Source: Ascidiella aspersa (Eukaryota). Taken from it: a stretch of 64,000 nt of DNA. Within the stretch, counting starts at the first letter, position 1; each line of letters begins with the position of its first letter. This document shows positions 8,208-34,784 of this stretch, piece by piece. The notes under the pieces are model-generated. The model did not search any database, was not told the DNA's origin, and saw only the letters and a list, made by a program, of their open reading frames with translations. Made by a program: the position numbers and the translations under genes. The stretch spans positions 26,040,001-26,104,000 of the forward strand of contig OZ004609.1 in NCBI GenBank assembly GCA_963924565.1. Direction: 5' to 3'.

Positions 8208-11200
8208 TTATCCCCTGCTGCAACATAGATTGTACTTTTGACACATTTCCGTCTTTTGCTTAGTCACTGAAATATAAAAACGTTAATGGTTAGCTATAAT
8301 TATATACATTACAGCGTCAATCCTAGGAACAACCAAGCTATAGCATAAACTAAAAAGGGCTAGAAGGCTCGCGACATTCGATTCCCTTTTTAATTACGAC
8401 CAAGCAGCGATCAGGCCTTTATTCTTACCGTAAGAAGGAATTGCGGCTGCCGGGCACAGGTAGCGCACTTCGTAGTCCTCGCATATCTTGTCGGACTGTT
8501 CGTGGTTGGTGCAGCGGAATCCGGTGCGGGGACTTGACTTGGTGATTTCGCCGGTTTGCGATGCCGGCACATGACCGCGAACTGTTCGGGCCTCGATGCC
8601 GATGGGGCGGCTGCAACACAAATTCGGAGGTTAATACCAGTGACCAGTGTTGTACAAGTCGTTTTGAAACGACCTGATTAACAGCCGTGTCATTTGCGAT
8701 AAAGTCGTTTAAGTATTAGTGCAGTAGTGCACGACATTGTCGCAGCAAGTCAAGTAATTTTACTATTAACAGTTTGACAATCATTTTATTAGCAACTGTT
8801 TTACGTGTAAAACGGCCGAGAAAGCCTAAACGGAGCCGGAAATTTTCAAATGGAATAAAATTTCATTAAACGTCTGATAAAAATACTGTGTGCAGCTATC
8901 ATTTAAATAATTTAGTTTTCATCGCAAGCTAAGCTTAAGTCAACTTTTTAGCATACATACAGCTATAGATAGCTATTGTTAAGGATAACGAAAACTCAAC
9001 ATACTACGTATTTAGCTGTTATGGACCACTTGGGATTGCTGACGTTGGCCGGGTGATAGTAAGCTAAGTATTTATAGCATGCTAATGTAGCATTATTTAC
9101 CTGCAAATACCCCTGTTCCACCTTCGTGCCCTGTACAGATATTCCATGTCGCCGGTGACGTCAGCTGTGTCCGTGCTTATCCAAGCTGACCAGGTGGAGC
9201 CCTGTTGGGGGGCCTCGGTCGTGGTTGGAGGGGTGGTGACTACAGCTACTGGGGTATCTATCGAAAACGTTTAGTGTAACAAACTGGATATGCGAAAACA
9301 CCTTATTGTTAAATTGTTCAAATTATGTATGCTCAAAGGTTACACATATTAAATGGAGTGTAAATATAGAATGATAACCGAAAATCGAACTTAAGTACTA
9401 TCGCGGGCCGGATAACTCAAGGACTATAGCGATTGTAAATATATAATGATAACCGAAATCAATACCTTCTCCTTTTCTGCACAAGTATCGGACGCGGTAG
9501 TCTTGGCAATTTCCAGCAGTCTGATGGGCGCCGCGACACAGCAGTCCCATTTGGGCGCTGAACTCGGCAAACACGTCGCCAGTTTCTCTTGCTGGAACCT
9601 ATAGAAAAACAATAATCAAATGTAAGGAAGGTAATACTATTTGTAAATTTGAAACGCCTGGTATGTTTGATGCAAGCACAATAGCAGTGTTCTTGTTTCA
9701 AACGATATGACTTACTCCTTGGACGGTTTGGGCTTGAATTGCAATTGGTTTAAAACAAGTTTCAGTTGCCGAAACCCTCAGTTCGTCGTCGTCCTTTCTA
9801 CTGCGGGATGGCGTCGATTTGTCGGACCACCGAGTCCAGAAAACTACGAATAATAGTTGCCCAACGTTTATTTACAGACTCATGGCGTTGATAATGGATA
9901 CCCTTATAGGTTTGGTCCGCGTTAAATAAAATAAAGTAAAATATGACTTACACATTGGAAAAGTACGTTTCGAAAAATGTTCTAACAAATTGCATATTAT
10001 GTTAAGTGCTATTATACAAAGGATATAAAACAAAAAAATAAAGTATCATTGCATTTATCTTGTCTGCGTTATATACATTTCAAAGGGGTTAAAAATATCT
10101 GCGTTAGCCTATATACAGTGCAAAAAGGCAAAATAAATAAAAATGCTGCCAGTGTGGTCTTCTTTATGAGTTCTTCGCCCCCCTGTTTACATTTTATGCC
10201 CCTAGGGCAACGTGGCGGTATAATTTTGGGGCCATTTTACACAACGGATAAATAACGTTTTTGTTTGTTTTTTTACGTGCAAATATTCCTCAGTTCACCA
10301 ACCTTCTTCAGATTCGATGCGCGGGAAATCGGAGATCCTTATAAGACCAGGTGGGCACTGGTAGCGAACTTGCACCCTGTCGTTTACCAATCGTTCCTCG
10401 GTGTCAAGCACCTGGTTGCACACCTCGTCCGGACGGTGACGCAGCAGATGATTCAGCGTTTCCGCGGCAGTCAGCTTAACAGCGCCCCTGGTGGAAGTTG
10501 GAAACCAGGCAGTCCACTGAGAATCTGCGAGCGGAATAATATTGGTTTATACTCGGTGAATTAAACCCAATCATCAATTTGTCATAATAATTTTACTCCT
10601 AGTTAAACTACTATTTAATTGTACTTATAAATAACAAGGACGCTAATAAATTTAAACAGTCATCAGATATCAATTGAAAAAAATGAAACGGTTGATTTAA
10701 AAAAAATCATTCTGCAGGATTGAAACTTACTGCCCCTGAATAAACTCCTTATAACCGTTGTAATCAGCATAGTTAAAAAAGGATGTTCTTATAAAATGTG
10801 AATAAATAGTTCTGTGGTACAAAAAGATTAGCGTTATGTATCGATGTGAATCGAAATGACGACGGCGAATAGTAACTTTACAACATATAGCCAAGAAAAC
10901 TTTTAAAGTTCTTATTGTTTTGGCTTTATTAAAATAGTTGAAAACTCAACTTTATGCTTTAAATACTCAAACCGGGAGATTTCGCTATTTGTCGAACAAG
11001 TAAAAAACGTCATCCCTTTATACCTTTCTCCTCGTTCTCCCTGCCGTCCGCATGGTAGCGCACGGGAGCGCCGTCGCGCCAAGCCTCCAAGTCGAGCGTG
11101 GGAAAGTCGGAGCAGGACTTCCGGGGATTGTCGCTCGAAACGATCTGCATCGGATTGGCTTGCACGCTCAGCATGTCCGGCGCAATGTCGCACAGGATTC

Positions 11201-14200
11201 TCGAATAACTGGTCGCCCGGATGCTGGCCAGCTGGTCTGTTTCGAACACGAAGTGAAATATGGGTCAGTCAGTCGCTATAGTCGTGACAAGTGGGTTTTG
11301 TAAACATGAATGATAAATCGCGTCGACAGAGCGCGGAGTTTAGACAGGACAGGCAAATGAGCAAATCAATTTGAAAAGCCGCGGGTTTAAAATGACTTGA
11401 GTCGCTTACAAACCTTTTTACAAAATTACTTGATAAAGTCCAGTCAAGTCACGAACTCTAGGTAGGCTACACTAAACCAATAAATTACAACTCAAATTTC
11501 CGGTTATTTTTCACAGGGTCGCCGCCAAGGCCAGCCTCGAGCCGTCGACGAAGGACATTTAAAAACACAGGTCAAAAACTCTATTTTACTAACTTTTTAG
11601 CGTAATTGCAACTTAAATTGCTCCTCGAAGCTAACTAGGCAAAAAGCAAAAATGTTGACTCCCAAGTCATGCCCTCAAAGAAAGTCAATTCATTTATTAA
11701 ATAATTTAGGGCACAGGGAATTTCCCAGTTTATTGTACCACTATATTTACCAGTGTTCTATAAAGTACCTTCGGTAAAATACTGGAAAACACCGCCGTTC
11801 TCGTGCCAGAATCGATCGCCCTTCCTGATGTCCCTGAACTGGTATCCGATGATGCAGGCGAAGGTGGGGCCGATCACGCCTCCTTCTACCGCCGTCTCCG
11901 ATATCGCGGCGATAAACAGGTCAATGTCGTCGACGTTGCTGCGAAAAAGCAGAGGGGGTTAACTTTGTAGATCAGACTTGTCAACATCTTTGGGCTATTT
12001 TAGATTGTTCTGCATAAAACCGAAAAGTACTTTTATTATGAGTTTTACGATCTCCGCCTATTCAAACACTAAGGGTTTGTCTATACGCATAATTCCTTAA
12101 ACCCAAATTATGAAGGCCATGCGTGAAGTAATGTTATGGCACGATTGTAGCACCATCTCATGTTGCAATACGCAACACACTGCTAGCTTTAACACTTTTT
12201 TATTTCCCTCCATAAAAAAACATAGCCATCATGTTATTGTCATTTACATTAAACCAATCGTTTGTAGAAAAACATGTACAATAAGTTTTTTTCAATCCAC
12301 AACATATAAACGCCAAAATTATAAAGAATTAGTTTGATTTGTATTATGAGTGATTTCACTAAATCAGTAAACTGCTCATGTTTAGTATTGAGTGTAATAT
12401 TTTTCTTACCGATTAACTGAGTCTGCTAGCTTGCCTTAAGCATGCAGTACACGTTTTTATGACGTTGTTCCGGACAAAAAAGTGAAAAATTCATACCCGT
12501 AAAGTCTGCGAAGCTTTTCCCGGTATTCTGGTTCGATCTCATCCAAGTCGCTGAAGCTTCGCGCCTTTTTCAGTCCGCAGAATTCTCTCCATTCGTTGTA
12601 GGACGGAATGCCGTGGTCGCGACCTCGCTGTATGTTGATCGCCATCAGGTCCAAGCCATATTGCCCTTCGGGATAATTGATGGTTAAATGTCGACTGCAG
12701 CTAATATCTCTCTTATTCCGTGCGCTACGTTTTCAATCCATGGCAATGTGGCTTCCTTATGCAAATTTTGCCTGAATGTCACATGCCTAACATTCGATTT
12801 AAATTCTTTATGAAAATTGCCATCGGCGAAAACTAACTCTGAAGTTTGATACAAGGGAAAGTTTACCATTCCTACTATACTACTATATTGGGAAAACAAT
12901 GGCGCTGTATATTTAATACCAGGCTCAGCGAAGAGAAAGTTTCCCAAGTCTTCAACAAAGGTTGAATCGACGTGCATGGCCGGATCCTTGGTGAATCCAC
13001 GGGCGATCGCGTTCATTCCACCACCAGTCTCGTTCAGGAACGGTTCGGTGTTGAAGAAACTATAAAGAAACACGATAATTTTTGTAATGGAATTGCGCCA
13101 GGTTTCTGAAAAGAGTGTTGTTTTTTAAATTAAATTAAACAACGATTATAGTATGTTAATATGATGGTCAATGTGGCGCAAATATAGATATATTTAGTTA
13201 CCAATCACGGAAAACAACTCTTGTTATAACAATATCACCGAATCGGTAGACCACAAGTGATTATTTTTTTCTATGTACGAGTCTGGTTTTAATTGGCATA
13301 TGCCAATTAAACTAAGCATATGCCAATTTAAACTAAAAATAACACATTCAATCATGAATTATGCCTCATGACAAATCAATATGAATAACCTATACACAAC
13401 TTTGACCGAAGGTATTGATAGAAAAGTTTTGCGTGTATAGACCTTGTATGTATGGTTTGTAAATTAAATGAATTTAACTATAGGCCTACTCCATTAACGA
13501 TAACCGAGGTTTCGTCGTAGTTTTGTATTTTGTGGAGCAGGTGTGGGCAGCATTTTCTATAGGGACTTTACGCATCTTATTCTAACCGCAACGTCAGTTA
13601 ATCAGGGATAAAACTAGGATATTTTGCGATTTACACTCAATGGAGGATCAAGATTAACGCAAAGCGCAAAAAAATATTTGCTTTTTCGTAGTTGAATCAG
13701 CCAAAAAATATAAAGAATGGCCTCGTGTCCAGTTTGTAAAATAGGTCGCTGGCCGGATTATTTGCGTTGGCGGGCCGAATTTGTCCTGCGGGCCGTAAGT
13801 TGCCACACCCCTGTTATAAAGATTGCGTTAGATCCACGGCTCAACCGAAAACGACATTTCAATGATCGCGATAACTCAAAACGCGCAAACATGTCCAACA
13901 AAGTTGGGTATTCGCCGCCGAATTTTTCTTAAACACGTAAAATGCAAAAAAATACCTTTCGCGAAGTGTCATAGGCCTTCCTTGTTCTTCATTCCAGCTC
14001 GGCTTGGGCCTAGTAAGCCGGTGCGTGATCATGCTGTGGCCGAAGCGGAAAGCGGCAGTCGCGAAAACGTTGGCCGTCGTTCCGTCGTAAGTCGCGTCGT
14101 AACCGTACCACAGGCCCTGCGTAAAGTAAACTGCCTTTGAGTATTTATGTTTTAAAACTACTATTATAGGTACCTACACCTGTCTTCTGTAACGAGATTT

Positions 14201-17200: not shown

Positions 17201-19539
17201 AACTGACGAAGCGCGGTGGTGAGAAAGCTTGTCAAGGTTGCAATACAATTTGTCTTTAAATAGTTCCACCTGATTACCTTATTTGTCGGTTTGTACTCAC
17301 AGTTGTCGGTGTTGGTGTCGGCCACCGCTACGGCGCGCTTCACCTGGAAGCACTTCTTGCCCTCGTTTTGCCGCTGCTCGTCGCTGACCGGGATCTCGAT
17401 GTTGATGCACTCGGGCGAAGGATCGTCGCAATCACACATTACCGGCTGCCCGTCTGCGCCTGGATATTATCGTTTTGCGTTACACGTTATTATATGTATG
17501 TATTAAAAGTAAGGATAAAATCGTGCACCACCCCAAAAGCACTTATATGTTACTTCGCATTCTGTAGCAGTAAAAAAGTTTGCTTGAAATAGGCCTTGAC
17601 GATAAAAAAAATGTTTTTTAGAATACTTTAGCAGTTTAGCTGCTTTTATTTGTTGGCAAAAGTACAAGTCAATTTTATCAAAAAGCTTTCTTTAACCTGG
17701 GCATGGCATGCAGCCATGGTAAAAAGCTACTAACGGTGTTACGCGACCAATACAAGGTTGGTAACCACTACCGTGTGTCATTGCATATTTTTTACGCTTT
17801 TCATACAGCCAACAAATAAAAAAAACTGCCACCATATAGGGCAAGGCCGCTCACCTATGTTGAGCACCGGAGTGCTGGCGATGTCGTGCGCGATGTACTG
17901 GCCCCATAGTGGAAGAAGGTGAGTGGCCGAGGTCGAGCGTTTCGACACCGAGTCCGCCATTGTCCTGGATATGAGGCGAGCAGAGGGCAGGGACCGGCCA
18001 TTAGATCGGGCGCGTGGCGTTCCTGTGTTAAACAAACGCGTCAATTTGGCTTCTGACATGGAGTGCGTGGGCTGCGATGTATATTTTAATGGGGGAACTG
18101 ATGCCGTCGAAAATTGTGTAGGTCTGCACTGTGAGGATAGTGTGGGCAAACACAGTTTAGGTGCTTAAGCTTCGATTAGGCACGATGTGGCTTAGTGGCC
18201 GCCTAATTGTCGCCCCGGGTGTTTTACACGATAGCATTTCGGCGACTTGTGGATCAACTCCAGCGGGTTCACTTGCATTAATATTATCTGCTATCGATTT
18301 AACGGCAAATCTGCACTCGGAAATGCATAAATTCAAAAAAACAAAACGAACCTGTTTTGTCGGCGTAAGCGGCTGGCAACAGTCTCTTGTACGACCTGGA
18401 CGCCCTGCCTCTGTTCTTGTCGACGCGGTTGTTGCAAGTTCCGTCGAACGATACGAATCTGCGTTTCAAAGAAAGCACGTTAGGTAAAGAATGCCACCCA
18501 AAAATCACATTGTCATATTAAATGCAATCTTTAGATTGGGGACATGAAGACATCGTATTTCTGGGCACTCAAAATGCAACACGCTGCACAAACAAATTGA
18601 TAAACATATGCTTTTAAACTAATAACGCCTGAGTTCGACTTGGCACGCTATATCTGTACAAATCAGAACTCTGGTTAACCTTGTATTACAAGTTCATATT
18701 GTAATGATACATGGCGTTACTTTGCTGGAGGAGTTTGACGTGCTCCTTTCCGTAAATAAGCAGTAAAATCAAACAGAAAAAAATAGACACTATTAAGAGT
18801 TTAATCGCTAATATCAGATTAAAGGATAGTGCCAAGCAAAGTAAACGTTATTTTTTCATTTGTCATAAAAACCTCCAAACAGTGAATTGCCAGGATTATC
18901 ATTCACTTACTTGTGTTCGTGCACCGGAGGACATTCCGGGTTGCCGAAGCAAGCGCTCGTGTCAGTTGCCGCTGTCGGAATGTCGTCACTAGGTGGCCTC
19001 GTGGGGCGCTGCTTCAACGACGGTCGGCGGGAAAAACGGGAAAAGAACGAATCGATATTGGTCAGTCGAAATTCTGTAAACAAGAAAAAATAAACGCTGA
19101 TCAAATGGTGAAGGGAACCTTTGTTTGCAGAAAAACTGCTTTGCATATTTAGCAACCTTTCAACATTCAATTGTCTACTCCAAAAGCGGTAAACGTAGAG
19201 CAAAATCCAACTTAGGGCGGTAAAACTTGTTGTACGTGACCTATGTGAGCTTTCAACACCATGTACGTTATATGGCAAAACTGTTACCACGCCATCGTAC
19301 ATCCAGGTTACAATGGTTTAGAAAAGCTCTAATAACATGGTATGTTGAAAATGAATAAATAGTTATTCGAAACGTTCAAAATAATACCTACTTCTGTATG
19401 GGCTTTGATATTCCTACTACGTCTAATAACATATTTCCGTGTAATCCAGCGCTAGTGTATGCACACTTTGTGTTTTACCTGTGGCGAAGCAGCAATGCAG
19501 CAGTGCGCAGCAGAGACTTAGAACAAGAAATGTCTTCAT
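8208..19539 (-). CDS. Secreted animal heme peroxidase (peroxinectin/MPO-like) with three C-terminal WxxW (CILP/mucin CysD-like) modules, paralog A, about 964 aa
   Basis: 20 phase-consistent exons: 19539-19479, 19073-18911, 18458-18352, 18022-17855, 17459-17301, 16511-16401, 15706-15557, 15160-15033, 14589-14476, 14116-13956, 13059-12920, 12665-12497, 11938-11769, 11236-11024, 10524-10303, 9843-9716, 9598-9466, 9257-9101, 8610-8429, 8266-8208. Signal peptide [20 protein letters not shown]. Peroxidase motifs [53 protein letters not shown]. WxxW modules end in [14 protein letters not shown] and DYEVRYLCP. Confidence 0.93.
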
Positions 19540-19628
19540 TTTGTCGTGAAATCTTTGCCTGTATAGCCTTAACTTTTCCAAACTTGATGCCAAGTGGCGA
19601 ATGGTGGTGTCCACCTGCCCCCGCGCCA

Positions 19629-19636
19629 ATATATAT
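19629..19636 (-). promoter_or_regulatory. Candidate TATA box of peroxidase A
   Basis: TATATA on the minus strand about 90 nt upstream of the ATG, within a GC-rich proximal region. Confidence 0.5.
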
Positions 19637-22526
19637 CCGACAAATTAAATCGAACGCGTCACGTTTTCGCCGTAATCGCCGCTCAACAATGCGCGTTGTT
19701 TATGCGACCAGGATATTTACTAGTTGACGCAGCCGCTCATTTCGGCTAGTTAAGGGTCCGATCGGTTTTGGTGGCGGGCCTCCCACAATCAGCAATTATC
19801 CCAAATTGCTGGGAGCGCAGGCCAGACGATGGCCGCCGTCGCCCAACATCCAATTTACAAGAAACAACACGTTCCGGCATGTCGCTGATTACGTTTTAAT
19901 TGAACGGCTCGTCCTTCGACGTAGAATACGTCACAGTCTACGACAGCCCTTTCCGTAAGGCCAGGAACGCAGAAAATTAAAGTGTTGTTGTGCCGATGTA
20001 TATTTAATCGTCTACTTTCGGGGCTAGTGAACGTAAAACACGGTATCGTTTACTAGGACGAGGTGAAAATCCTCAATCCAATTTTAGTCGTTATCACAAT
20101 ATTTGGATCATGGCATTTCTCGTCGGTAAAGGCTAATCCAAACCAAACAGCAAAAATGTACGGCTGGTAATGTACTTTAAATTAGTCCTATTTTAGAAAT
20201 AAATCATATTTGTTTATTTACAAAATAAGACATTCCACAATTCTTGACAGGGATTCTTAACCTTTTCTTTAATACCCTTGGGGTATTTAGAAGAGATATT
20301 GAGGAATTGTTATTCGGCTATTCAAACCTCAAATTTCTAGTGGAAATAGAATTCACAGTATAAAAGTCGACTATATTACAAAATAATAAATTATGAAAAT
20401 CTAGAGCCGATGCCCAACGGCATGTTGCGATTTGTTTACATCATGCGGTGAACGGCATTCGCGATCGGAACACGGTGGAATAAACTCCGCCATTAAAGGT
20501 AGACAAAGTCGACAAAGATTAACAATGAGGCCAGGGAGTTGTTTCGTAAAACGTTTAGCAATATGTACTGAAGTAATTGTTTGTTGTAGTTGTAAACTAA
20601 GTAAGCGGAACACCTTAAAATTTTAACTTGCTTTATTTATATTGTTGGTATTTAGATAAAACATGTGTGACTCCAGTACACTATAACTTACACTTCGTGT
20701 GATACTGTTGCACAGGGTCTCATCTAAATTTCGAAGTGATTGCAAGCTTTCGCGCTGTTGGAAGACAAGGATATTCAATTAAAAAACACACATTAAAAGG
20801 ATTTGATTTACACTAAGATGAAATCAAAGTATGAGTTGCATACCATTACATAGCGTGGTAGGCCCAATAAGATTTTAAGTTTAAAAGGCAAGACGGATCT
20901 AAATCTATACACTAGCCTAAAGGAATCACATACAGGTATAGGCCTATAAATATTTGTGAATTAACCCCCAGATAGGAAGACATTGGTGTGCGTTATCGAC
21001 TCTGTAAGTTGCGCGTGTATTCAAGTTCACAGACCAAGGCTCCTGCGGCTTTAATAACAGCAAGCGAAGCAAATTTAGGTTTGTGTTTGTCTTGGCATTT
21101 AACGAACCGTCCCACCACCTCGCACGCGGTAAATGTTCGCTGTGTATTAATAGCCTGTGCCCAAATTGATTTGGACAAATGACGAGCGCAAGTAAGTTTT
21201 ACGCACACCAGAAGAGTGCACTACGCAAATTGTGAAAGAGCATCATAACACTTTAGGGCTCGTCAACCAAATGACGTCAACCAGATGATTAGCCCTTGGC
21301 CGAAAGCCAACAACTTTCCCGAGACGTTTTGTAGAAGAAAAGTGCGAGTCCGTCACCTTAAAGTCGATTTCCTGGAGCTGGAGACGCCTGTACCGCCTGC
21401 GTATAATACTAGTTTAATAACATCAAAACGATTTGCTTTGGTCGGGCTAAAATTCTCGCCGCCGGCCAGGATGAACACATTCCGCGTATTTTGTAATAAC
21501 CTCGATTTAAGTGGTAGAACAAAATCGATTAACTACATAGTTGCGATGTCCACTAAAATCAACTTTTAAAAATAACATAGGAGAAAACGACTAAGTGACG
21601 GACGCTTTTTAATAAATATGGAGATTTTTGCCCTAAATCCCTTAAGGAAAGTTTTCTTTGTTTGCCGTTAGCGTCTCTTGTGGCCGAATGGCGCGTTACA
21701 TCGGCTTTCTCTACACCATCCTATTTAAGCAGCAATTAAACCGGGTTTGACATTAAGTTGAGGACATTAATTCAAGTGCAAATCTAATTGGTCTGCCTTG
21801 TGTGTGGTATAAGTTAACCATATGGCCTCACAAATATTTGACGTGATCTCAAAGTCAAACGGTTTTCTAAAGACAATATAGACTTTTAGTATATGACCGT
21901 TGGACCTTATCTCAGCCATCTACTTAACAGTACATAATAAATCACCTCTCTATATATGTGTAGTTAAACACGCCAAAACAAAGCATCAGCGTCGTAGGCT
22001 GTGGGAACAAAGATTTATTTTACCTGGATGGGCATTGGTGCTGCATTGTGAGCTCTGTCTTTAAAATGGCGCAGCCGGAATTTTGTTTTACTGCCGCATT
22101 TTATTCAAAAAAATGATTTAACAAATAATAATATATGCGTCGAGGAAATTTGGCGAAATGCTCATAAACCGGGGCAATTATTTCACCCGCCCGTGCGGGA
22201 AGTCTATACTTAACCGCAAATAGATCGCCGCGCAAATGAGCAGAGAGGCCCGAAAAAACCCGCAACTCTTAAGCGTTCGCCGGGTCTCCAAAACATGTCA
22301 CGTCATCAGCTATTGGCTGCTGGCCGGGGTAGTTTCCCCGCTCTGGGACCGATAATTACGCGCCCGGTCTGATCTGGGTTTCGAAAGAGCGCAGTGACAA
22401 AAGGAACAACATGTATTTAAATTTAGACGCAAAGCGATCCACGTTCCGCGAATGCCTCTTGTTTTGGTTTAGGCTAATTATAGAAATCTGCAGCTCGCCA
22501 GATTTTTTTGCGCCGCGAACGCTCGT

Positions 22527-22532
22527 TATAAA
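22527..22532 (+). promoter_or_regulatory. Candidate TATA box of peroxidase B
   Basis: TATAAA at the downstream edge of a GC-rich block (about 22130-22560), 366 nt upstream of the proposed ATG. Confidence 0.3.
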
Positions 22533-22892
22533 CGATTTGCGCTCGGTATGGCAAGTCACTTGTGCAGAATACACAGATAGAAAGCAATTCTTTGCGTTTG
22601 TAATCAACAGAAAGATTTAAATTTGTAAAGAGCGAAGTGTGTGTGTTGCAAACTGACGTTGAGTCGATGCGATTTGGGTCGACTGTAGTTAGTCTTATTA
22701 CTAGAATGGTAGTAGTCCAGGGCTGCTTTAGGTTTTAGAGTTGCAGTTAAATTAAATACAGTGTCATTAGAATATTTTAAAAGTTTCTTGTGTTTTTGCG
22801 GTAGGCCCTATAAAAAGAATCTTACACCACGTCGTTCTTATTAACAATTACTCTATTGCAGTTATAATCAAACATATAAGGCGTAGGCTACG

Positions 22893-25800
22893 ATGCTGAC
22901 CCCAAAACCATTGCTACTTATTTTTCTTGTTTTAAATTCCAACGTCCCACAGGGTGTCGCCTTCGGTGAGTTTTGTTGATACTATATACATTTAGAATAG
23001 AGATTAAAAACGAAATGGATATCTTCTATTCTGACTTTAATTGTGACATTTTTATCAAATAAAATCGTTTTCAGATAAACTACTTTAGAACATGTTTAAT
23101 TTCTTAAATCTTTAAGTGGTTTGCTTTGGTTGATCAGTAGATGAAAGCATTGCGAACTCACCCGCCTTTATGAAACGCTTACCGTATATTTACCCCTATG
23201 ACTAAAAACCTACAAATATTGCCAAAAGAACTCGTTTACCAAAGCGCCCGTTGTAATTGTCGCGCAGATCCGTTCGACAGGTTCGTATTTAACTTTCGTG
23301 CGCCGGCGGACAACGCAACGACGGTCGAAGAAAGGCAAGGTGCCGGGTTTAATTTCCCCACAACACCACCCGGGTCCAGCCCACGCCCTGGCGCCGGACC
23401 ACGGCCCACGCCCGCGGTGGCCGGTTTCGTGATCAACACCAAAGATGTGGATTTCGCACCTTGCCCACACAAACCCTCGTGCCCCATCGAAGGAACGAAG
23501 TAAGATTAAGGCGATGTCCAGCATGTCTTCCGCCGTGTCATGCACCATACAAACTTGGACAACTAGATTTATTTTAGCTTTGTAAAATTAGATTAGAAAT
23601 AAAAGAGAGCATTTTAGTTTTTCAAAACTAGATTAAAATTAGATTTAGATCATTTTAGTTTTCTCAAATTAGATTACTGAATTCTTGAAAAAAATAGGTA
23701 TAAACTATAATTTGAACTAGAATTACATTTCATTCTTTACAATCAATTTAGTTTAAATCGCAATTAAATCTTATTAGAGTTTGAATTGCAAATATTTTCG
23801 TGCTGTTTTTACAGGTGTTGGTTTTTAGGCTGCACGTCTTCCGTCTTGTCATGTACTATATAGGCTCTGTATGGGTTATAGAAAACATATAGGCGCCAAA
23901 CCCTAAACACGCAAATAGTCAACTTTGGAACACGATACACGTTTTTTTTCAGTAATTTCAATAAAAATATCAAAGCCATAATATTCGATAAAAACGACAT
24001 TTCGCAATTGATGGCATACGTTATTGTTGAAACGTCTGTAAATTGCGAAATGTAGTTTTTATCGAATATTATGGCTTTGGTATTTTTATTGTAAATAGTC
24101 AAATTTACATAAAACTAGCCTACTTAAGCATTTGCTGTTGAAATTCATGTCTAAGGTGAGGAGTTGAAATAACAAAGTTAAAGTGGTTCCGTAGTGTATT
24201 AGGTTCCTCTGTCTTTATTGACGTCAACCTTAGCGTTGGATGGATATTTATAAAATAAGCTTCGGCCTCGGGTATTATGAATACCTTCTTCTTCTTCTTT
24301 CGTGTGTCAAATACGGAGCTCTGTTGACGAGAGCCATTTCAGAGTGTCATTGTCGAGGTCTCTGAGGCCTCGTTCCCCATGGGGTGGATGGTAGGTGGTA
24401 CATTCCTCCACGATGTGGTCCACAGTTTGGTGTTGGGCGCCACATATGCAAGCTGGATTGTCGGTCAAGCCCCACTTCAGCATCGACGCTCCGAAACAGC
24501 CGACTCCAGTGCGGAGGCGGTTAAGATTAACCCACTGTCGCCGTGGAAGGTCCAGGCCTGTTACTTCATAAGGGCTGTCTATGTAGCGATGTAATCTTGT
24601 TTGTGGTGCTGCTGACCGCCTCTCCGTCCACCGGTTCTTTACCCAGGTGTCCTTGGACATGCCATCTCTGACGACCTGTAGCATGAATACCTAAGCCTAT
24701 TCAAATCCTTGTATCCCGGGGCATTATCCCGTATGTTGCGTCTACAATAGTGAACTTCACTATTCCTATGAACAAAAACTTAATATTGAAATAGATAAAT
24801 TGTCGCCAAAATTTCAAATCAAATAAATTAAATTAAAACGCGGCCAATTCAGCTGGAAAATTTAATTAAATACCAATGAAACACATCGTACTTCTATAAT
24901 TAAATTTCCACATAAAGATACATCACAGGGGTTATTCAGAAATAATTTATACCTCAGGCCTTTTGCGGTAGCCTATAAGCGTCGCATAGCCTATCACTGA
25001 ATGTCGCGAAGATTAAAATCGCGATTAGTATTTGCTTTTAGTTGTTTAAAAGCGTTATCTTGCACTTTTGAGCTTAAGGGTAGTTACATAGTATTCCAAA
25101 TAAAATATGTCAAAGCGGCGTTAAGTGTTTTCCCTGCCTTCTCATGTCGATTTATAATTTTAAGGATTTACCGTCCCGATGGTTCATGCAACAACCCGAT
25201 CGATGGGAGCCGCGGGGCGGCAGAACAACCTTTGAAGAGATTGCTGCCTCCTGACTATGCCGATGGCAGAGGTAAGTTAAATTTAGCAGACAGCATGAGG
25301 TAAAAATATGTTTTTCAAGAACTATATTTTTATTATATAGCTAATCTCACCTAATCGGTCGAATTTCGTGCAGGGAAACCAAGAATCAGCGTAAACGCAA
25401 TTCCGCTGCCCTCCGCGCGCAAGGTTTCAAATGGGATGCAAGACACGACCATCCAGCGTTCCAGCAAATTCTCGCAGCTCCTTCCGTTCTGGGGCCAGTA
25501 CATCGACCACGACATGGGAAGCACGCCTTCCTCTCAACGTGAGTTTGTATAAGTTGTTGTTTATCTTAAATCGTGCACGGGCGGAACCAGCACAACACGG
25601 CAAGTGTCAAACATCAGAATTAAAAATCAGTAAACGGAAGTATACAAATACGCGATTCACAAGTCCTATATATATACACAGTTTTTAATAGTTGTTTGCT
25701 CAATCCTTGATTTCAAGCTGCTATAAAATATATTCATTGGTTATTTATCCTTGATAAATACAACCTACAAACCAACATACATGTGCAATAAGTTTGTTTA

Positions 25801-28800
25801 AAAGTCGGCCAGACGCATTTTGGCGACCAAAACGCAGATCTGATTATCAAACTATCAACGTCTTTCAGGTTCGACAGGAGTAAATTGTTTTTGCGGAAAC
25901 CGCGACCCGGCTTGCTTCAACATTCCACTCGGAGTACAAGACATTCAATTCCAGCGTGAACAAAGACAATGCCTTCCGTTGGTACGCTCATTGCCTGTAC
26001 CGGATTGTCATTGTAAGTAAAATTTTAATTAAATGCTGATTTCAGTAAAACGCACTTGTTTTTAAGTTTGAAAACAGAGGTAAATTCAATGAAAATATTA
26101 AAGCCGCAATAGTTCTGGCTTTAAAAACCCTTGTATTGTGTTCCGAGGTAAATTGTTTTGTCAGTTTTGTAGTCACATTTCTTAGTACGTGATTCACGGC
26201 ATAATCAAGCTGTTAAACATTACGACCACAGTGCCGAATGTTTCGTATTCAATATAGGTAGCACCAAAGTGAGACAACAGAGAAACGATATAACCTCTTA
26301 CCTCGACGCCGGAACAGTTTACGGAAACAATGATAAACACTACAGACAATTGCAGGACCCCAATTCACGTAAGGATAGCGAAATTGAATCATTGTATTCT
26401 GTGTAAGTTGTGTTAACTATATATAACTTACGTTCACGATGTTAAAGCATTTTTGTATTTATTGAACTGCCTTTACAGCCATTGGAAAACTGGTTACCGG
26501 AAACTTACGGGACCACGGTATTTCCATTCCTCGCGAGTCGCCCGTATTGCCCCTTACTTCTCAAATCGACGACAACGACGCCGCCAAATTCATGGCCTGT
26601 CCACGAGCCATTCACAAGCCTGCAAACGTACCTTGCTTTTTCGCCGGTAAGATAAAGACTCTATATTGTAAAGCTGTATTTACTGGCTTTTCAAAATTGG
26701 CTCAGTGGCCCTAGTGGTCCGTGTATAAATCTCATGGAGTCCGCGCAACATCTTTGAATTTAATTGCCTGTTGATTTACTTTGGCCAACGCACAGTCGCA
26801 CACCCCTTGTATTAGGTTTTAAAAGTGATAAATCATTTAACATTATTTATTATGTGTTTTGTATAAGGGCTGAATTAAACGCAGAAATTGCTATACTGTG
26901 ATTTGTTTTCTTTCCACATGGAAAGCAAGCAACAAGGAATGGTTATTTTATTGTAAAGTTTAATTTTGTCATTGCAGGTGACGAAAGAGCAAACGAAGTG
27001 CCTTCTCTTACTTCACTACACACGCTTTTCCTGCGACTCCACAACGACTTAGTGGAGCGACTCAGCAGATTGAATCCCGTCTGGGGTAGAACCAAACTCA
27101 TCGAGGTAAATGGGTACAAAATACGCCCAGTACCTTATCTATATTTATTAGGTCCGTATGAGGAGTTCAAGTTGGATAGCGGACTAGTCACGTGTGTCGG
27201 CTATAACCCGAAATCGAGTAACAACCTTATTGTAATATTTGTCACTTATGTTGAGTTTACCGAAAGAACAGCTAAAACATGTCATTGCTATTTTACGAAA
27301 ATTGCCGAGATGGTAGGTGATGGGAAACAATTCATTGTTAAAATTGTTTTCGTCATCGAAAAACACTCATTACCCGTTAACCGATATGTGAAAAATAACA
27401 TTATTAGCACCATTTAGAAACAGTGAGTAGTTGCCGAGCTTGATTTGTCCTCTAATGGCGCGAGCTGCGATTTTAGGACTGCCGTCCCAATTTGAAATGG
27501 TCAATCTTGCTCTTTCAGCCAAATTACTTAGGCTGGCACGTTCTTTGCGCGAAACGGGATGGAAAGCACACGTCCTTAAAATATGACAACAAACGACTGA
27601 CGATAGATTATTGCATCTGCAGGAAAACGCGCAACGATAATTACCCTACTTTTGCACGAAGGGGTCGTTAGGCTTGTTGCTGTGTATTTAAGAAGACGGG
27701 ATTGATTGCTGCCTTTACTGCACGACAATTTGTTTATAATTGCAGTGTACTGCGCAATAAATTAAATTCTGTCGTCTTTCAGCAAAAATTAAAATTTCAA
27801 TTTCGATACCGTTTGCCACAAAAGCATTTTATGTGAACTCTGATAATAATTATGCGAATATCAAAAACCAAAAACTTGTTCATAAAACGGAACAGTGTAC
27901 AAAGAAAATTTCACATAAGAATATATTATTATAAAACCTGTGCCCTGTTTTAGTGAATAACTAATTTTTGTGATACAGGAAGCCAGAAAGATTGTTGCGG
28001 CTCTTCATCAACAAATTACCTACAGGGAGTTTCTGCCAATAATCCTCGGACAAACCTACATGAAGCGATTTGGGCTTGAACTGATACAACAGGTAAACTT
28101 TCACGAATTCACTTTGGCCAACGTGTTAAGTATAGGCCAGGGTAACATAATAAACGTAGTACATGGTTTGGTTCCAGTGGAGTCTCTACAACCGTTGTTC
28201 CTAATCCGCAACTAAGTTGTTCTAACCCAGATGAGTCAGTGCAAATATTTTAAGCCGGCATAGAGTGCCGGTATTTACTTAACAGTAGGTGTTATTATGA
28301 CGTCTACCGTATTCCAATTTTAGTCTTGTGACTGAGCCGATTTACAGCTACCATTTATCCGAATCTACATAAGGGCGAGTCTATACCTTGTATTAAACAT
28401 TCAACTGTGTTTGATTAACTCCAGGGTTACTGGAAGGGATACGATCCATCGTACGATGCGACACTCGCGAACGTATTTTCTACAGCGGCCTTCAGATTCG
28501 GTCACACACTCGTTTCAGAAACCTTCGTGCCATACCTTCCATCGTGGCATCGTACTGGGCCGTCTTTGGCGCTGCGCAACAGGTAAACTGACTTTTTTTA
28601 GCTACAACGAACTCGGGCACATTTGCTACACTAGAGTGAAAAATGGTTAACTCACTGCCGTGTTCTCATTAAAATGTGGATAACTATAAAACGCATTATC
28701 AATCGAAGGTATCTTTAATCATTCCCAAACTAATTTAGGCTTAATTATCCGGAATAATTACCATTATACGATTTAAATTTATTGAATGCTTTTTATGGCC

Positions 28801-31800
28801 GTAGTAAGAAGTCATTTGGTATCGGGCGGACGTATATTTTGCTCAAAGTTTTTGGGAACCATCCTTCATAAAAAAAGATTTTCTATTTCGTCTACAAATA
28901 CCTAACAGTATTCCATTGAAACGCGGGAAATCATCAACCAAAATATTTTCCTTATGCAGTTTCTTCAACACTGAGCCGATTTTGTTTCACAATGGAGACG
29001 GCGCAAATCGGATCATTCGCGGAATCACCACCGAATCATCCCTCACCTTTGACTCCACATTCTCGCAAGATATGCAAAACTTTTTGTTTGCACCGACGGG
29101 TAATTTTTATTGATGTTTTAAAATCCCAACTATACCTCTGTCTTCTACGAGCTAGTCTTTTTTCCTTCATTTTTTATTTAAAAAACATTGTAGGCGACAA
29201 TACGACCCACCTAACTCTACACGAGACCCGAAAAATGTACAATGTAACAACCCGTTGATTTTTCACTCTTAAAATGTGTTATTTTGCGATCGTGTTTGTC
29301 AACGTGATGCGCGTAAAACGATTCGGTCACTAAGCGCGTATCATTGTGGGGAGAGGACAGAGATCAGCAAAACATGTATTTTATTTCTTAACAGGAACGT
29401 TTGGTCACGACTTGCTTTCCATTAATATTCAAAGAGGCAGAGACCACGGCATCCCGTCGTACAATGAATGGCGACAACTGGCCGGTTTAAGGAAGGCAAC
29501 GACGTTCGACGACTTTATCGAAATTCCTATTGACAGAAGGAACCGACTTCGCAACCTTTACAAGTAAGGCTGGTGGAAACACAAAGCAGACAGGGAATAA
29601 ATTAAAAGCCCTTAATTTTAACGCAGGCTTGACAGCAGTCTTGTAAATAAGTCATTTTGCAACGAATTAGTCCCAGTCAATTATTTGTAAAACAAAAAAG
29701 TCCAAGTCAAGTCTTTTGCTATAATAGGAAGTCCCAGTCTAAGTCATAAAATTCCCAAGTAGAGTCATTTTAAAAGCAAGTCAACTTTTAAGTTAAGTCA
29801 AGTCATTTGAAAACAGTGACTTAAGTCATTACAACACTGCTTGACAGCGCCTATAATATTAAACATGTGCCTGCATGTCAGCACTCCAGAAACTTAAATA
29901 TATTCAGTTTAATTATAGAAAATATGAACAAGATTTTAAACCGTTTATGCGCAGCTCTGCTGGTAGGCTACTCTTAATTCTGCAAATATATGTCCCAACG
30001 TTTTACCGGGCGCCGCATATTTGAGAGTGTAAACCTAACCTTTACAGCAACGCCGTCGACAACGTGGATCTCTACATCGGGGCGATTTCGGAGCGTTCTG
30101 TGCCTGGGGGCGTGGTCGGACCCACTTTTGCCTACATCATCGGACACCAGTTCCGCGACCTAAAGAGAGGCGATCGGTTCTGGTACGAGAACGGCGACGA
30201 CCAAACCTTTTTTACGCCTGGTCAGTTAAAATTTTACTCTTGTGCCCTAGTGTCGTCGTCACATTTATCCAATTGCTGTGGCGACAAAGCACGTTACAAT
30301 GACAGTTAGCCGAAGCGGTCATTGATCTTGTGTTATGGTCTCTTTAGGCCAACTCTGAGTGTCAAAAGTAGCGAAATGGGCATAAACGACTCTGTTGAAT
30401 AAGTTGTTGAACTTTTTATTGCTATTTATTTGATGCAAGCCCTACTCATATTTGGATTTTTTGAAGGCCACCCTTTGCCTGGCTTTAATTTTCAAGTGTG
30501 CCCAAGAAGTCTTTGCCAAGGGCCTTTCGCCATAAAGTGTTGTGCTTTTTTCTTAAAGCTGTCGCTTTTTACAGAACAACTTCAAGCCATTCGTCGCATT
30601 AACTTGGCGAACCTTATCTGCGACCAGATGAAAACCACACGAAGCATACAACCAAACCCGTTCTTACAAACCACCACGCCTGGCAACAGCCGTCAGCCGT
30701 GTAGCAGTTACGGGCATTTTGATCTTTCTGCGTGGGACCAAAATGGCTTTCAAAGGCCTGTTACAGGTAAGGTTTCGTAAAGTGAAATTACTTTTTATTT
30801 TGATAATATTTGAATTGCTTTGAAGATCAACATTGACCTTATTCAGCCGTTCCTTGAGGCAGTGCTTCTTAACCTAAGGGTCGCGACCCAAAATTGGGTT
30901 GCTGTTTGATTTGGTTGGTTGCCGCCTGAAGTAGTCGACTACAAATTTTATTACTGAGATCGGTGCAAAACAAAATGTCTTTCAAATTCAAGAAAACTAT
31001 TGGAGAAATACGAATGCATGGCTCATATTAATTAAATTGCAACTCATGTATGTTACTTGTCTTAAGGTTTGTTCACTTAATATGAAAATCACTGAAGGGA
31101 ATTTGGTCGCCAGCGTTTCTCTGTTATGTTTGAGCTTAGTATTTGTGTCGCCGCGAAAAAGAGGTTAAAAACTCTGCTTTTAGGGAAACTTATTGGAAAG
31201 GGTACAAGGGAAAAACGTCAAAAAATTTGTTTTTTAGGTTACTTTGCTTGGTATTGAGTAAAGTGCCGAAAACGACCACAAAATTGAAAACGGTTTCCTA
31301 TATTATTAAATAAATTGATATGCGACATCTTCTCTACGCAGGCTCCCCCTCGTTCGAGTGGACCCAATACTTTCCGCTAAACATCGGCAAAGAAGACAAG
31401 AAGCTCGACCCGATCGGACTGATGGACCATCTCAAGCTGAATAGACCCGACGATGTTTGTACGAGGCCGACAGGGTCCGAAACGCGAACAGTTAACGGCC
31501 GACAGCAAATGCGCTTCCGGTGTCCACCAGGCTCCCTCAAGTCGACTGTCTACCCTCCCGCGGACGTTAAGATAGGTACGCAAACTGCGAATCGTGTCAA
31601 TGGGTGTTTTGATGTGAGACCAGTATTTTTTTATAGATTTCGTAAGGTTACCGCTAAGAAATTTTAAGGGACAAAGCTTGTTTCTTTTTAAATAGGTATA
31701 TTTTAATCCTCTGCTGTATTGCCGAAATTATAGGCTCTATTCTGCCCGAGAAAATCTAAACGATCGTTGTGGTCCAAATCACCTAATGGGGCCATATACC

Positions 31801-34784
31801 GGGGTTTCGACAGTCCCAACCGTGTTTTATGTTAAACATGGCGTCTGATCTATTTAGTTGGCTTCATTTTATAATAGTCACTAATACATATTTCATGGTA
31901 CAAAAGAGTGGCGTTTGAATCACCTAATTTGGGAGATCCACAAATCACCTAATTATCCTATAGTAGGCTATAACTATAGATAGACCCATAACATGCTCGC
32001 AACTTTAGGAAGATGGACGGAATGGGAAGACAGGTCAACCCCGGGAAGAGATGACGACGAGTCTCGCGGACCAACGCACAGATGCCTTTCACCGATCGCA
32101 ATACAAGTGCAGACCCTACGCGGGGTATATACACATTTTTTTAATCAATTAACAGTTGTTAAAAGTGGTGTTTAAATGTATTTTTCGGACACAATGTTTC
32201 AAGATAGTGGGCTTCTTTTGACACAACGTTTAAATAAACAATCACAAAACACAACTTTTTAGAATGCGTTACATTCATGAGTATAAATCGACTTGAAACG
32301 AAAAAATGATAATCATATAAAAGCCGCTATACTTCCTAAGTGTTATTTCGCGTAGCAAAATATAGGTTAGTCGTACACCATTCGACTTTTCACTACGTTG
32401 AAATGCATTTTCAACAAATCTATTATCTTGCAGCAACCAGCAAGTGAAACGGGCAACGTGTTTGCGAAATTCGGCGTGTTCTCCGGATTTCTTTGTCGCG
32501 GAAAAGATCAGAGGTCGCGAAGATGCCGCGACTACAGGGTCCGCTATCTTTGCCGTGAGAGTAAGTTAATGAACTTATGGTAAAAAACCCAAAATCTATT
32601 AATAATTTTGGTCACGATCTGGATTTCGATACCGCGCTATTTGAAACGAGATCTGCGTTTTTCCGAAGCTAACTATCTGGATTTTGAAAAAACAAATGTT
32701 TAACGTTTAAGTCGAGTTTACAAATTCATGATCTGGATGATAAAAGCAAAAAATCGTAACAGTTTCACAAACACGGTTCGTTTTGACGCATTGCAAACTG
32801 ATAAGGGTATTTTTAGTTCGATCTGGACCTCTCAAGGACGACCCAGTGGATCCACCGAAACCATGCCGACCGACTCCACCGACTCCACCAACGCCCACAA
32901 GACCATCGGTTCCAGCAGGATTCAGATGGACTAGGTGGTCAAATCAGGGTAATCCATCTCCTGTAACTTTCGGCGACGACCAGGAGTTTCTTTTTTACGT
33001 CGGAAGCACGGTTGGATTTTGCCCGTAAGTGTATTATTACTGTTTGCTGGGATCGTAAAACGAAATTCCTATTTCTATACTGTAGCGAATCTATCTCTGC
33101 CAAAGTTTGGCAAGCGAAGGCTGGAACGCGTAAACTGAGACCTTATTTATCTGTTCATAAAATAACTTAATGATAATGTACTGTAAGATTTGGCTTATGA
33201 AAATTGATTAATTTAGGTGTTTTATATGTTAGTGAACACGTAACATATACTTAGCCGCAGAACTTTTTAGAAAGAGAGCTTGTTTCAAATTTTTTTTTTT
33301 TTCTTTGTTAATTTAACCCTTGTTTCTAATGCCAATGCTGTGACTAACCGCTATTTTTTAGAAATGACTTGACTTGGACTTAAGTCCAGAAAAAAAAAAT
33401 AAATAAAATGTCTGGTTTGTAACACTTTTATTAACAAATTTATGCCGTAAGGATACCGGTTAGTATTTTTTATTTATTTACGATTGCACTTGAAAGTCAC
33501 TAATTTTTCAAACCCGAAACAACTAGCAAGTCCAAATCAATTCATTATGCCTAAAAGACTGGAATCAAGCATTTTAAAAACAGTGCCTTAAATGCAATTA
33601 AGTCATTGTCATTGACATAATTAATTTCAACACTGGAGAAACCATTTAAAAAACACGTTGAGGTAATATTGTATCATAATTTTGATGCCGAGAAGTGCTT
33701 TTTGTTCATTCTGTAAGGTCTCCAACAGTAGGCTATCCCACCGAAAACACTAATTATAAAATCATTAAAATGGAGGATAAAAATATTTTTAGTTTTGCAA
33801 ACAATTTGCGAAAAAAATGTGTTTTTGCAGAAATCCAGTAAATATTGAAGTGAGAGAAGTAGGAACTAGAATACCAGCTGCTGCCACCGGCGACAGCATT
33901 CTGATTATGAATCGTGAGCAAGGATTTTACTGCCAGGGCGCCTCTCAACTCATCAGACAGACGTGTCGTAACTATGAAGTCCGATATCTCTGCAGGATAT
34001 CTGGTAAGTCAGGCAAACAGTTATCAGTTAATATGACGCAAAATAAAAACGTGAAATTCCATGGGTAAAAATTAAACCTAACAGTTGAATTAGACCTAAA
34101 AAGTCTATTTTTTTTCTGATAAAAGCCTTCTTTGCAGCACGATTAAAGCTTCCATGTCGGAACAGCAACAAAGTAAACAATTAGGCCGACAGAAATAAAC
34201 AGTTTTTTACCATAAAAAACATAAAACTTTTAAGCGCCTATAATTCAAACGAGTTTTTTAGAAAGGATATTTAGGATGCTTGACCTTCGGAAGCTAGTTT
34301 TATTGTTTCCAACTCTCGGATAGCTATATCGCATTCGCATTGTAAATATACGTTAAAATCTTTGCGTCACCTTTAGTACTATGCGACCGGCAAAACTGCT
34401 TTTCTTGTTTTGGTCATCATAATATTCTGAGTTGTACACTGTACAGGCCTGTCTTCAACAAGCTAAAAAACGTTTTTCCAGGGTCAAACATGAGAAACGG
34501 CCTTACCGCTTGTGGTTGAATTGGCATAAGGTTAAAATATATTTTTATGTATGATACAACTTAATTTCCTACATAAACTTTAAAGTAAACACGTGGGTAC
34601 ACTAGAGAGCCGGGATCGAAGCAAAATTCAGATTATTATGATCTCCGTTTTGCCAACATTGGTAACTTTTTCCTAGAATGCGAATTATATTCAACCGTTC
34701 GGCGACTTATTTATCACATATTTAATGTTTTTTTAAACAGATATTGTGAGGCGTCCTCCGGTGTTTGGTTTTCCGGGAGTGTGA
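22893..34784 (+). CDS. Secreted animal heme peroxidase with three C-terminal WxxW modules, paralog B, about 991 aa
   Basis: 20 exons with the same intron phases as paralog A: 22893-22965, 23268-23499, 25165-25271, 25374-25538, 25869-26012, 26258-26368, 26479-26646, 26978-27105, 27979-28092, 28425-28582, 28960-29099, 29395-29563, 30048-30220, 30575-30766, 31342-31575, 32009-32124, 32434-32560, 32817-33024, 33831-34003, 34741-34784. Motifs [75 protein letters not shown]. Exon 1 ([24 protein letters not shown]) and the last exon are the least certain. Confidence 0.92.
24287..24682 (-). mobile_element. 5'-truncated non-LTR retrotransposon (LINE ORF2 C-terminus) in intron 2 of peroxidase B
   Basis: Open frame [45 protein letters not shown] (CCHC zinc-knuckle-like ORF2 tail). 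(GAA)n 3' tail on the minus strand. Exact 10-bp TSD ATGAATACCT at 24277-24286 and 24683-24692. Confidence 0.9.
29636..29839. mobile_element. hAT-like MITE with internal AAGTC repeats
   Basis: TIRs CAGTCTTGTAA...TTACAACACTG and exact 8-bp TSD CTTGACAG (29628-29635 and 29840-29847). Degenerate relatives at about 11390-11450, 33360-33635, 42285-42470 and 44680-44920. Confidence 0.85.
30860..31176. mobile_element. hAT/Charlie-like non-autonomous DNA transposon remnant
   Basis: Ends CAGTGCTTCTTAACCT...AGGTTAAAAACTCTG with imperfect 8-bp flanks CCTTGAGG / CTTTTAGG. Confidence 0.6.

Follow-up and report, generated by a model that had tools for sequence, protein, structure and literature searches.

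A head-to-head pair of heme peroxidase genes

We analyzed a window of 64,000 nucleotides from the tunicate Ascidiella aspersa (assembly GCA_963924565.1, contig OZ004609.1, positions 26,040,001 to 26,104,000 of the forward strand). Unless another genomic location is named, coordinates below are positions within this window. Between 8,208 and 34,784 lie two divergent (head-to-head) paralogs, here called A and B; the predicted product of each is a secreted heme peroxidase that ends in three WxxW (CysD-type) modules, M1 to M3. Their exon translations paired one to one at 35-60% identity, and the joined models aligned at 44% identity across 919 residues. The start codons, at 19539 on the minus strand for A and at 22893 on the plus strand for B, were 3354 bp apart. 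The features of the pair are as follows.

Gene A (minus strand)
8394-19539, minus: coding span, 19 exons, 954 amino acids; signal peptide, Pro/Thr linker, peroxidase and M1-M3 (open spliced model)
19479-19539, minus: exon 1, ATG and signal peptide (hydrophobic N-terminus; phase-1 donor at 19479)
18911-19073, minus: exon 2, Pro/Thr-rich linker with a CxxxxC-P motif (predicted acceptor at 19073, the top splice score)
11024-18458, minus: exons 3-14, heme peroxidase domain (PF03098, exon by exon)
18458-18352, 18022-17855, 17453-17301, 16511-16401, 15706-15557, 15160-15033, minus: exons 3-8, peroxidase domain
14589-14476, 14116-13956, 13059-12920, 12665-12497, 11938-11769, 11236-11024, minus: exons 9-14, peroxidase domain
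10303-10524, minus: exon 15, M1, predicted truncated two-Cys WxxW module (WTAW; hhalign)
9466-9843, minus: exons 16-17 (9843-9716, 9598-9466), M2, four-Cys WxxW/CysD module (WTRW; PF13330, E=0.0032 for the N-terminal half and 8.9e-08 for the C-terminal half)
8394-9257, minus: exons 18-19 (9257-9101, 8610-8394), short Pro/Thr stalk and M3 (WSAW, four Cys; PF13330, E=1e-13)
8394-8396, minus: stop codon

Spacer
19540-22892, no strand: region between the two ATGs, 3353 bp, candidate shared promoter region

Gene B (plus strand)
22893-34068, plus: coding span, 19 exons, 988 amino acids, architecture as in A (open spliced model, phases as in A)
22893-23499, plus: exons 1-2 (22893-22965, 23268-23499), signal peptide and Pro/Thr/Gly-rich linker
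25165-30766, plus: exons 3-14, heme peroxidase domain (colinear with Phallusia P0155)
25165-25271, 25374-25538, 25869-26012, 26258-26368, 26479-26646, 26978-27105, plus: exons 3-8, peroxidase domain
27979-28092, 28425-28582, 28960-29099, 29395-29563, 30048-30220, 30575-30766, plus: exons 9-14, peroxidase domain
31342-31575, plus: exon 15, M1 (WTQY, two Cys)
32009-32560, plus: exons 16-17 (32009-32124, 32434-32560), M2 (WTEW, four Cys; PF13330, E=1.5e-08 on the C-terminal half)
32847-34068, plus: exons 18-19 (32847-33024, 33831-34068), Pro/Thr stalk and M3 (WTRW, four Cys; PF13330, E=2.5e-11)
32847, plus: acceptor of exon 18, uncertain; alternative at 32817
34066-34068, plus: stop codon

Exon models were built by searching for splice sites with the reading frame taken into account and by scoring the candidates against homologs from tunicates; the weakest acceptors were those of exons 2 and 18 of A and exon 18 of B. 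Each model contained 18 introns, and all 36 introns were of the GT-AG type. The intron phases were the same in both genes (1,2,1,1,1,1,1,0,0,2,1,2,1,1,1,0,1,2), and exon lengths were equal between A and B for six exons. Joined models were used only in local alignment, hhalign and the tree; database, family and fold searches were carried out with single exons or with orthologs. Over its full length, gene A was colinear with both Clavelina P0074 and Phallusia P0155, and its closest matches were Ciona P0288 (56%) and Clavelina P0074 (54%). The closest match of gene B was Phallusia P0155 (55%), with which its exons 3-14 were colinear at 44-77% identity per exon. Both genes thus appear intact, with spliced models that were open throughout, and are predicted to encode secreted peroxidases with catalytic residues. 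A preliminary description of the locus had proposed two divergent paralogs 3.35 kb apart with identical intron phases, each encoding a signal peptide, a Pro/Thr linker, a complete peroxidase domain and three WxxW modules with a stalk before the last. This layout was borne out by the models and by sequence, Pfam and hhalign, and the two Pfam families it had anticipated, PF03098 and PF13330, were both matched, exon by exon, in the window genes. The exon number it gave, 20 per gene, was corrected to 19 coding exons each.

Both proteins start with a hydrophobic signal sequence; next come a Pro/Thr-rich linker with the CxxxxC-P motif and then the peroxidase domain. Exons of gene A matched positions 3-529 of the An_peroxidase profile (PF03098), most of the peroxidase exons exceeding the 25-bit cut-off (best E=1.6e-22 and 9.9e-20). 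The distal Gln/His, the distal Arg, the Glu that forms a heme ester, the proximal His and the RGRDHG motif were kept in A, in B and in essentially all relatives. A combination of Gln-x-x-x-His, Arg and proximal His was present in both genes (AAFRFGHS in A, AAFRFGHT in B); the comparison with LPO was made through ortholog P0155.

The two genes differed at the position of the second heme ester, which is Ala in A (WGQYIAHD) and Asp in B (WGQYIDHD). The two-ester (Asp and Glu) feature of LPO, EPO and peroxidasin is therefore not a property of the family: Glu was found in both genes and Asp only in B. Every clade member checked except gene B had Ala, Val, Thr or Ile in place of the Asp, including the Ciona B-type gene, the Clavelina tandem neighbor and the four paralogs from this genome in which the motif was found. 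A Styela peroxidase with a ZP domain, the sister of the clade, had Ser. The Asp was mostly kept in amphioxus, arthropod and echinoderm relatives. The most economical reading of this distribution is that Asp was lost at the base of the tunicate clade and regained in the gene B lineage. Because only the Glu heme-ester residue is kept in gene A, strong halogenation (chloride or bromide) by A and by most of the family is unlikely, whereas the chemistry of gene B may be stronger toward halides, in the manner of LPO or peroxidasin. Halogenation, which had been suggested for both genes, is accordingly disfavored beyond iodide and thiocyanate for A and nearly the whole family, which lack the Asp-ester residue.

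The C-terminal tails were assigned by profile and fold comparisons. Mucin2_WxxW (PF13330) was matched on the C-terminal halves of M2 and M3, at 33.2 and 52.2 bits in A and at 35.6 and 44.5 bits in B (cut-off 22.4), and M2 and M3 matched each other with a probability of 99.8% by hhalign. M1, encoded by exon 15, had no Pfam match. It was kept in 29 of 29 aligned family members and matched the N-terminal halves of M2 and M3 with hhalign probabilities of 95% and 91%, and on these grounds we classify it, from sequence, as a truncated WxxW module with two Cys. The WxxW motifs are WTAW, WTRW and WSAW in A and WTQY, WTEW and WTRW in B, the second Trp having been lost in M1 of B. Mucin CysD domains bind two Ca ions, and their first Trp may be C-mannosylated; here, acidic DDDE or GDxE stretches lie downstream of the WxxW motif. 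The Pro/Thr-rich stalk before M3 spans approximately 20-25 residues.

Further evidence came from orthologs. By sequence, the last module of Phallusia P0155 matched the MUC5B CysD structure 8oer_I (E=8e-6). An AlphaFold (AF2) model of the tail of P0154, an mRNA-derived ortholog, comprised three compact modules with a predicted local distance difference test score (pLDDT) above 90 and a disordered stalk. With this model, the only significant Foldseek matches were MUC2 CysD1, MUC5B CysD and MUC5AC CysD7, each with a probability of 1.00. The target-normalized template-modeling (TM) scores were 0.62-0.75 (0.73-0.75 for MUC2 CysD1), and the root-mean-square deviation was 2.4-3.1 Å. The evidence for a CysD beta-sandwich is thus that of the P0154 model rather than of the A or B tail. 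Together with the profile matches, it supports the view that the tails of A and B are predicted CysD-type modules of the genuine kind.

A tunicate-wide family

When the last exon of A was compared with 1.84 billion cluster representatives, 635 matches were obtained. Among the 150 best WxxW matches, a peroxidase domain was present in three: Clavelina XP_076810669.1, Styela XP_039255236 and one unnamed environmental protein. A full-length search with the Clavelina protein revealed relatives containing both peroxidase and WxxW in Ciona (two types, one with a C-type lectin), Phallusia (two types), Styela and Oikopleura, as well as in unnamed short contigs; Styela had at least eight such proteins. 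All named members of the fusion family were tunicate proteins. In the same search, every amphioxus, arthropod, mollusc, nematode and echinoderm match was without WxxW, and outside tunicates the nearest relatives resembled invertebrate peroxinectins and chorion peroxidases, not vertebrate MPO or TPO. A homolog search with the tail only gave seven matches; it was limited by the word index and is a weak test of taxonomic range.

A maximum likelihood tree of the peroxidase domain was built from 57 rows, in which paralogs from this genome were represented by chains of tblastn matches (and are therefore rough). The 27 fusion rows, together with five short and probably truncated environmental rows, formed one clade with a Shimodaira-Hasegawa-like approximate likelihood ratio test (SH-aLRT) support of 98. 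This clade stood apart from amphioxus and protostome peroxidases, and its sister was the Styela ZP-domain peroxidase. A fell with the Ciona and Clavelina proteins (SH-aLRT 99); B fell with Phallusia (100). The order of signal peptide, linker, peroxidase, M1, M2, stalk and M3 was colinear with that of clade members. As judged from these sequences, the architecture belongs to a tunicate-wide clade, common to all tunicates examined, and is not peculiar to the A/B locus.

Annotated orthologs include Ciona intestinalis XP_026689400.1/XP_078483095.1, Clavelina lepadiformis XP_076810669.1, Phallusia mammillata A0A6F9DB57, Styela clava XP_039255236 and its paralogs, and Oikopleura dioica E4YTE0/E4WT44. 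They belong to the same clade, contain PF03098 followed by M1, M2, stalk and M3, and are 54-56% identical to A or B; unlike gene B, they have no Asp heme-ester. They carry automatic names such as "salivary peroxidase/catechol oxidase-like", "lactoperoxidase-like" and "WxxW domain-containing protein". No functional study of these orthologs was found in the literature, and no description combining peroxidase and WxxW was found in searches by architecture and by Pfam names. The idea that the architecture is specific to this locus was thus refuted, since a tunicate-wide family is already present in NCBI and UniProt annotation. The preliminary description had regarded an architecture both widespread and already characterized as fatal to its proposal; the former holds for this annotated family, whereas no characterization was found. 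The window genes are new members of an uncharacterized, tunicate-wide variant of multidomain heme peroxidases whose proteins have already been annotated automatically, and the finding is less novel than first supposed because the proteins were already in public annotation.

At five further loci in this genome, peroxidase exons preceded exons of the WxxW type (M1 and/or M2), both lying on one strand, and a partial peroxidase was detected near four of them.

C3:26528575-26539210, minus: further fusion locus
C7:22757483-22767769, plus: further fusion locus
C7:22778387-22790329, plus: further fusion locus
C7:22810454-22817718, plus: further fusion locus
C7:22830247-22837646, minus: further fusion locus
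C7:22820077-22822288, minus: partial peroxidase

The C7 copies clustered with the lectin-bearing Ciona and Phallusia subclade. The family has therefore expanded, with at least seven loci in the Ascidiella aspersa genome and at least eight proteins in Styela.

The arrangement of the pair was also found outside Ascidiella. In Ciona, a divergent gene for a 956-residue peroxidase starts approximately 2.3 kb upstream of the A-type gene, and this neighbor resembles the B type (identity of 59% to Phallusia P0155 and of 51% to B) more than the A type. Because Ciona has the same divergent pair of A-type and B-type genes, the sequence comparison indicates that the head-to-head pair predates the split of Ciona from the Ascidiella aspersa lineage. 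In Clavelina, a second fusion gene lies in tandem, downstream of the A-type gene, instead of a head-to-head pair. The 3.35-kb spacer between A and B was unique in the genome (self match only), with a GC content of 0.41 and a CpG observed/expected ratio of 1.26, and no DNA similarity was found between it and the equivalent 2.3-kb spacer of Ciona. The conserved head-to-head arrangement is, taken by itself, consistent with co-regulation of A and B.

Several related domain combinations were observed. In invertebrate chordates, the partners of the peroxidase also included further domains that bind matrix or glycans, namely a ZP domain in Styela, a C-type lectin domain in Ciona, Phallusia and Clavelina, and either a lectin or an F5/8C domain in amphioxus. 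Database proteins with alternative fusions were P0228, P0158/P0180/P0306, P0218-P0235, P0035, P0047 and P0058. WxxW modules, in turn, occurred with Kunitz, WAP or VWA domains in amphioxus and with trypsin or VOMI in unnamed contigs.

Proposed function and alternatives

Accessory domains often direct animal heme peroxidases to their site of action, as in peroxidasin, TPO and Duox. A mucin CysD tail represents a fourth accessory-domain design among these enzymes, restricted to tunicates as far as seen. LPO, MPO and EPX share with the family the Gln, His and Arg of the distal side, the residue of the Glu ester, the proximal His and RGRDHG, and the LPO and MPO chains were the best solved-structure matches to the peroxidase domain of ortholog P0155 (E ~1e-85). 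These mammalian enzymes differ in having no accessory domains; in LPO and MPO, moreover, the heme is ester-linked through Asp as well as Glu, compared with Glu only in A and the rest of the family. No vertebrate peroxidase occurred among the 120 best full-length relatives. Dictyostelium peroxinectin A carries a single Glu heme-ester and oxidizes iodide and thiocyanate rather than bromide and chloride, a pattern that would match the residues of gene A and of most of the family. Its structure (PDB 6erc) was also a sequence relative of the ortholog (E=1e-62); it differs in being a protist enzyme with no CysD tail, and gene B differs from it in having the Asp.

Peroxidasin is a secreted heme peroxidase with matrix-binding LRR, Ig and VWC domains that cross-links collagen IV of the basement membrane (PMC3390340, PMC3533774). 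It shares with A and B the concept of an enzyme whose matrix-binding accessory domains let it act on its own matrix, and differs in that the accessory modules of A and B are C-terminal CysD units. No Pfam match to LRR, Ig-C2 or VWC was detected in the exon translations or in full-length orthologs, in which only PF03098, PF13330 and, in one subclade, Lectin_C were found. Thyroid peroxidase, which has CCP and EGF modules and a C-terminal transmembrane anchor, is different again: the exons and full-length orthologs gave no CCP or EGF matches, and the C-termini of A and B are short and polar. Judged by names, no tunicate protein called thyroid peroxidase was present among the 120 closest relatives.

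The tail resembles the CysD domains of mucins (MUC2 CysD1 6tm6/6tm2, MUC5B 8oer, MUC5AC CysD7 8ov0) in its PF13330 match, WxxW motif, predicted beta-sandwich and Pro/Thr linker before the module, the difference being that it is carried by an enzyme instead of a polymeric mucin. In mucins, CysD domains form Ca-binding beta-sandwiches carried by Pro/Thr linkers, and they clasp the VWD and C8 domains of neighboring mucins, and additional CysD domains make mucus gels stronger (PMC7599080). A second lead comes from the house of Oikopleura, in whose rudiment two peroxidase-domain proteins, oikosins 21a,b (HE774610/HE774611), were found by mass spectrometry. Expression of oik21a was localized to the giant Fol cells, within the region responsible for the food-concentrating filter, and the giant Fol cells also produce the WxxW/CILP-like oikosin 1 (PMC3390340).

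On the basis of the role of CysD in mucins and of the peroxidase oikosins of the house, we propose, with about even confidence, that A and B are members of a tunicate-wide group of secreted peroxidases whose CysD tail tethers the enzyme to a secreted matrix, where it oxidizes small substrates. By analogy, it is plausible that the tail acts as such a tether: the peroxidase would be retained on a secreted glycoprotein matrix such as the pharyngeal mucus net, the larvacean house or the tunic. This matrix might be rich in mucins or in WxxW-repeat proteins, the latter being abundant in this genome. With H2O2 supplied by a Duox-type oxidase, the peroxidase would oxidize small substrates such as iodide, thiocyanate or protein tyrosines in place. 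This would yield antimicrobial oxidants, a matrix modified by iodination or cross-linking, or both.

In the Ascidiella genome, WxxW modules that are full-length and encoded by single exons occur in many arrays, for example at C7:27.48-27.53 Mb, C8:18.92 Mb, C1:23.32 Mb, C1:4.38 Mb, C4:9.81 Mb, C3:28.15 Mb and C8:10371658-10371924. These are probably mucin- or oikosin-1-like matrix genes and are candidate partners of the peroxidase tails.

Several points weigh against a matrix-tethered peroxidase. M2 and M3 have four Cys and M1 has two, compared with ten in mucin CysD, and the binding mode may differ. Binding partners of the tail are at the level of candidates, and the chemical specificity is inferred from residues. 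Neither the O. dioica fusion loci (L002, L003) nor the mRNA contig L004 contained the in situ primers of oik21a when up to six mismatches were allowed, and the primers were likewise absent from L001; in this comparison, the putative link between oikosins 21a,b and the O. dioica fusion proteins CBY38729/CBY06830 was assessed through the probe primers rather than oikosin sequences. Finally, in one RNA run of the same species (X3), none of 7.8 million sampled reads fell on 8208-14207, which covers the 3' half of gene A, a result that gives no verdict on expression.

That RNA result also bears on the possibility of a gene-model artefact, in which the peroxidase and WxxW exons would be on separate transcripts or one copy would be a silent pseudogene, as no same-species read crossed any junction (in this one run, over the 3' half of gene A). 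In relatives, however, the fusion is transcribed as one message. A 3820-nucleotide Logan contig from a public run of a relative contained an uninterrupted open reading frame (ORF) of 951 residues with both domains, and a metatranscriptome contig of 3420 nucleotides (1069-residue ORF) aligned to Oikopleura genomic DNA in intron-separated blocks, one splice junction falling between the peroxidase and WxxW parts. Given these transcripts and the intact frames and canonical splice sites of the 19 exons in both copies, with their matching phases, we consider separate genes or a pseudogene very improbable. Colinearity of A and B with full-length orthologs, and the same exon order at the five further loci of the genome, also speak against an artefact.

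The tail could also serve other ends. It might drive self-association or Ca- or pH-dependent granule packing, the released peroxidase then acting as a soluble generator of mucosal oxidants like lactoperoxidase. The requirement for CysD1 in MUC2 filament assembly at Golgi pH (PMC7599080) favors this alternative, as does the closeness of the peroxidase domain to LPO and MPO among solved structures. On the other hand, the family-wide conservation of the tail order M1, M2, stalk and M3, and the fusion of matrix- or glycan-binding C-type lectin and ZP domains to peroxidases in and beside the clade, fit targeting better, and we regard packing as unlikely. Alternatively, the proteins might be peroxinectin-like immune factors from blood cells, opsonins or adhesion factors in which CysD binds microbial or self glycans and the peroxidase kills locally. 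The peroxinectin- and chorion-peroxidase-like affinities of the nearest non-tunicate relatives, the C-type lectin domains of the sister subclade and the discussion of an immune role for house peroxidases by the authors of PMC3390340 could be read in this way. So could the KGD of A and the RGD of B; however, these lie in a conserved xGDRFW motif at a position common to all animal peroxidases (DGD in LPO) and are weak evidence. We judge an immune role quite unlikely.

A bolder version of the matrix-tethered peroxidase can be formulated. The family would be a tunicate matrix-tethered iodinating or halogenating enzyme docked on the very mucin-like material that it iodinates or cross-links. Such an exocrine system would foreshadow the thyroid pairing of peroxidase and scaffold protein, and A and B would form a co-regulated two-enzyme system in which B, with its regained Asp, adds bromide or halogenated-aromatic chemistry. 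We consider this version speculative and improbable.

The family is nevertheless of interest in tunicate biology. Tunicates build three unusual secreted matrices: the mucus net, the house and the tunic. To our knowledge, the enzymes that iodinate or halogenate tunicate matrix proteins are largely unidentified; the A/B family therefore offers concrete candidate enzymes that can be tested in Ciona. In addition, one heme ester link has been lost throughout the clade and apparently regained in gene B, a natural experiment on how linkage determines halide specificity.

Other features of the window

Some features were observed within introns of the two genes. Intron 2 of gene B contained, at 24307-24684 on the minus strand, a 125-residue ORF with a Cys/His-rich tail and with no Pfam match; we take this tail to resemble the C-terminal end of non-LTR (long terminal repeat) retrotransposon ORF2 proteins. 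In intron 10 of gene A, at approximately 13400-13800, the word depth of DNA contigs increased to 209-1180 from a level near 53, and several variant letters and loose ends were present; this points to a high-copy repeat inside the intron. In intron 15 of gene A, at 9891-10056, 164 bases were skipped by one DNA contig (run X1); this may reflect an indel polymorphism between haplotypes.

Elsewhere in the window, two ORFs on the minus strand (439-969 and 1429-1887) had no match in the Pfam scan. An intronless ORF of 695 residues at 58257-60344 on the plus strand corresponded to a full-length HSP70 (PF00012, E=6e-271). It carried an N-terminal extension of approximately 59 residues and may be an organelle-targeted form.

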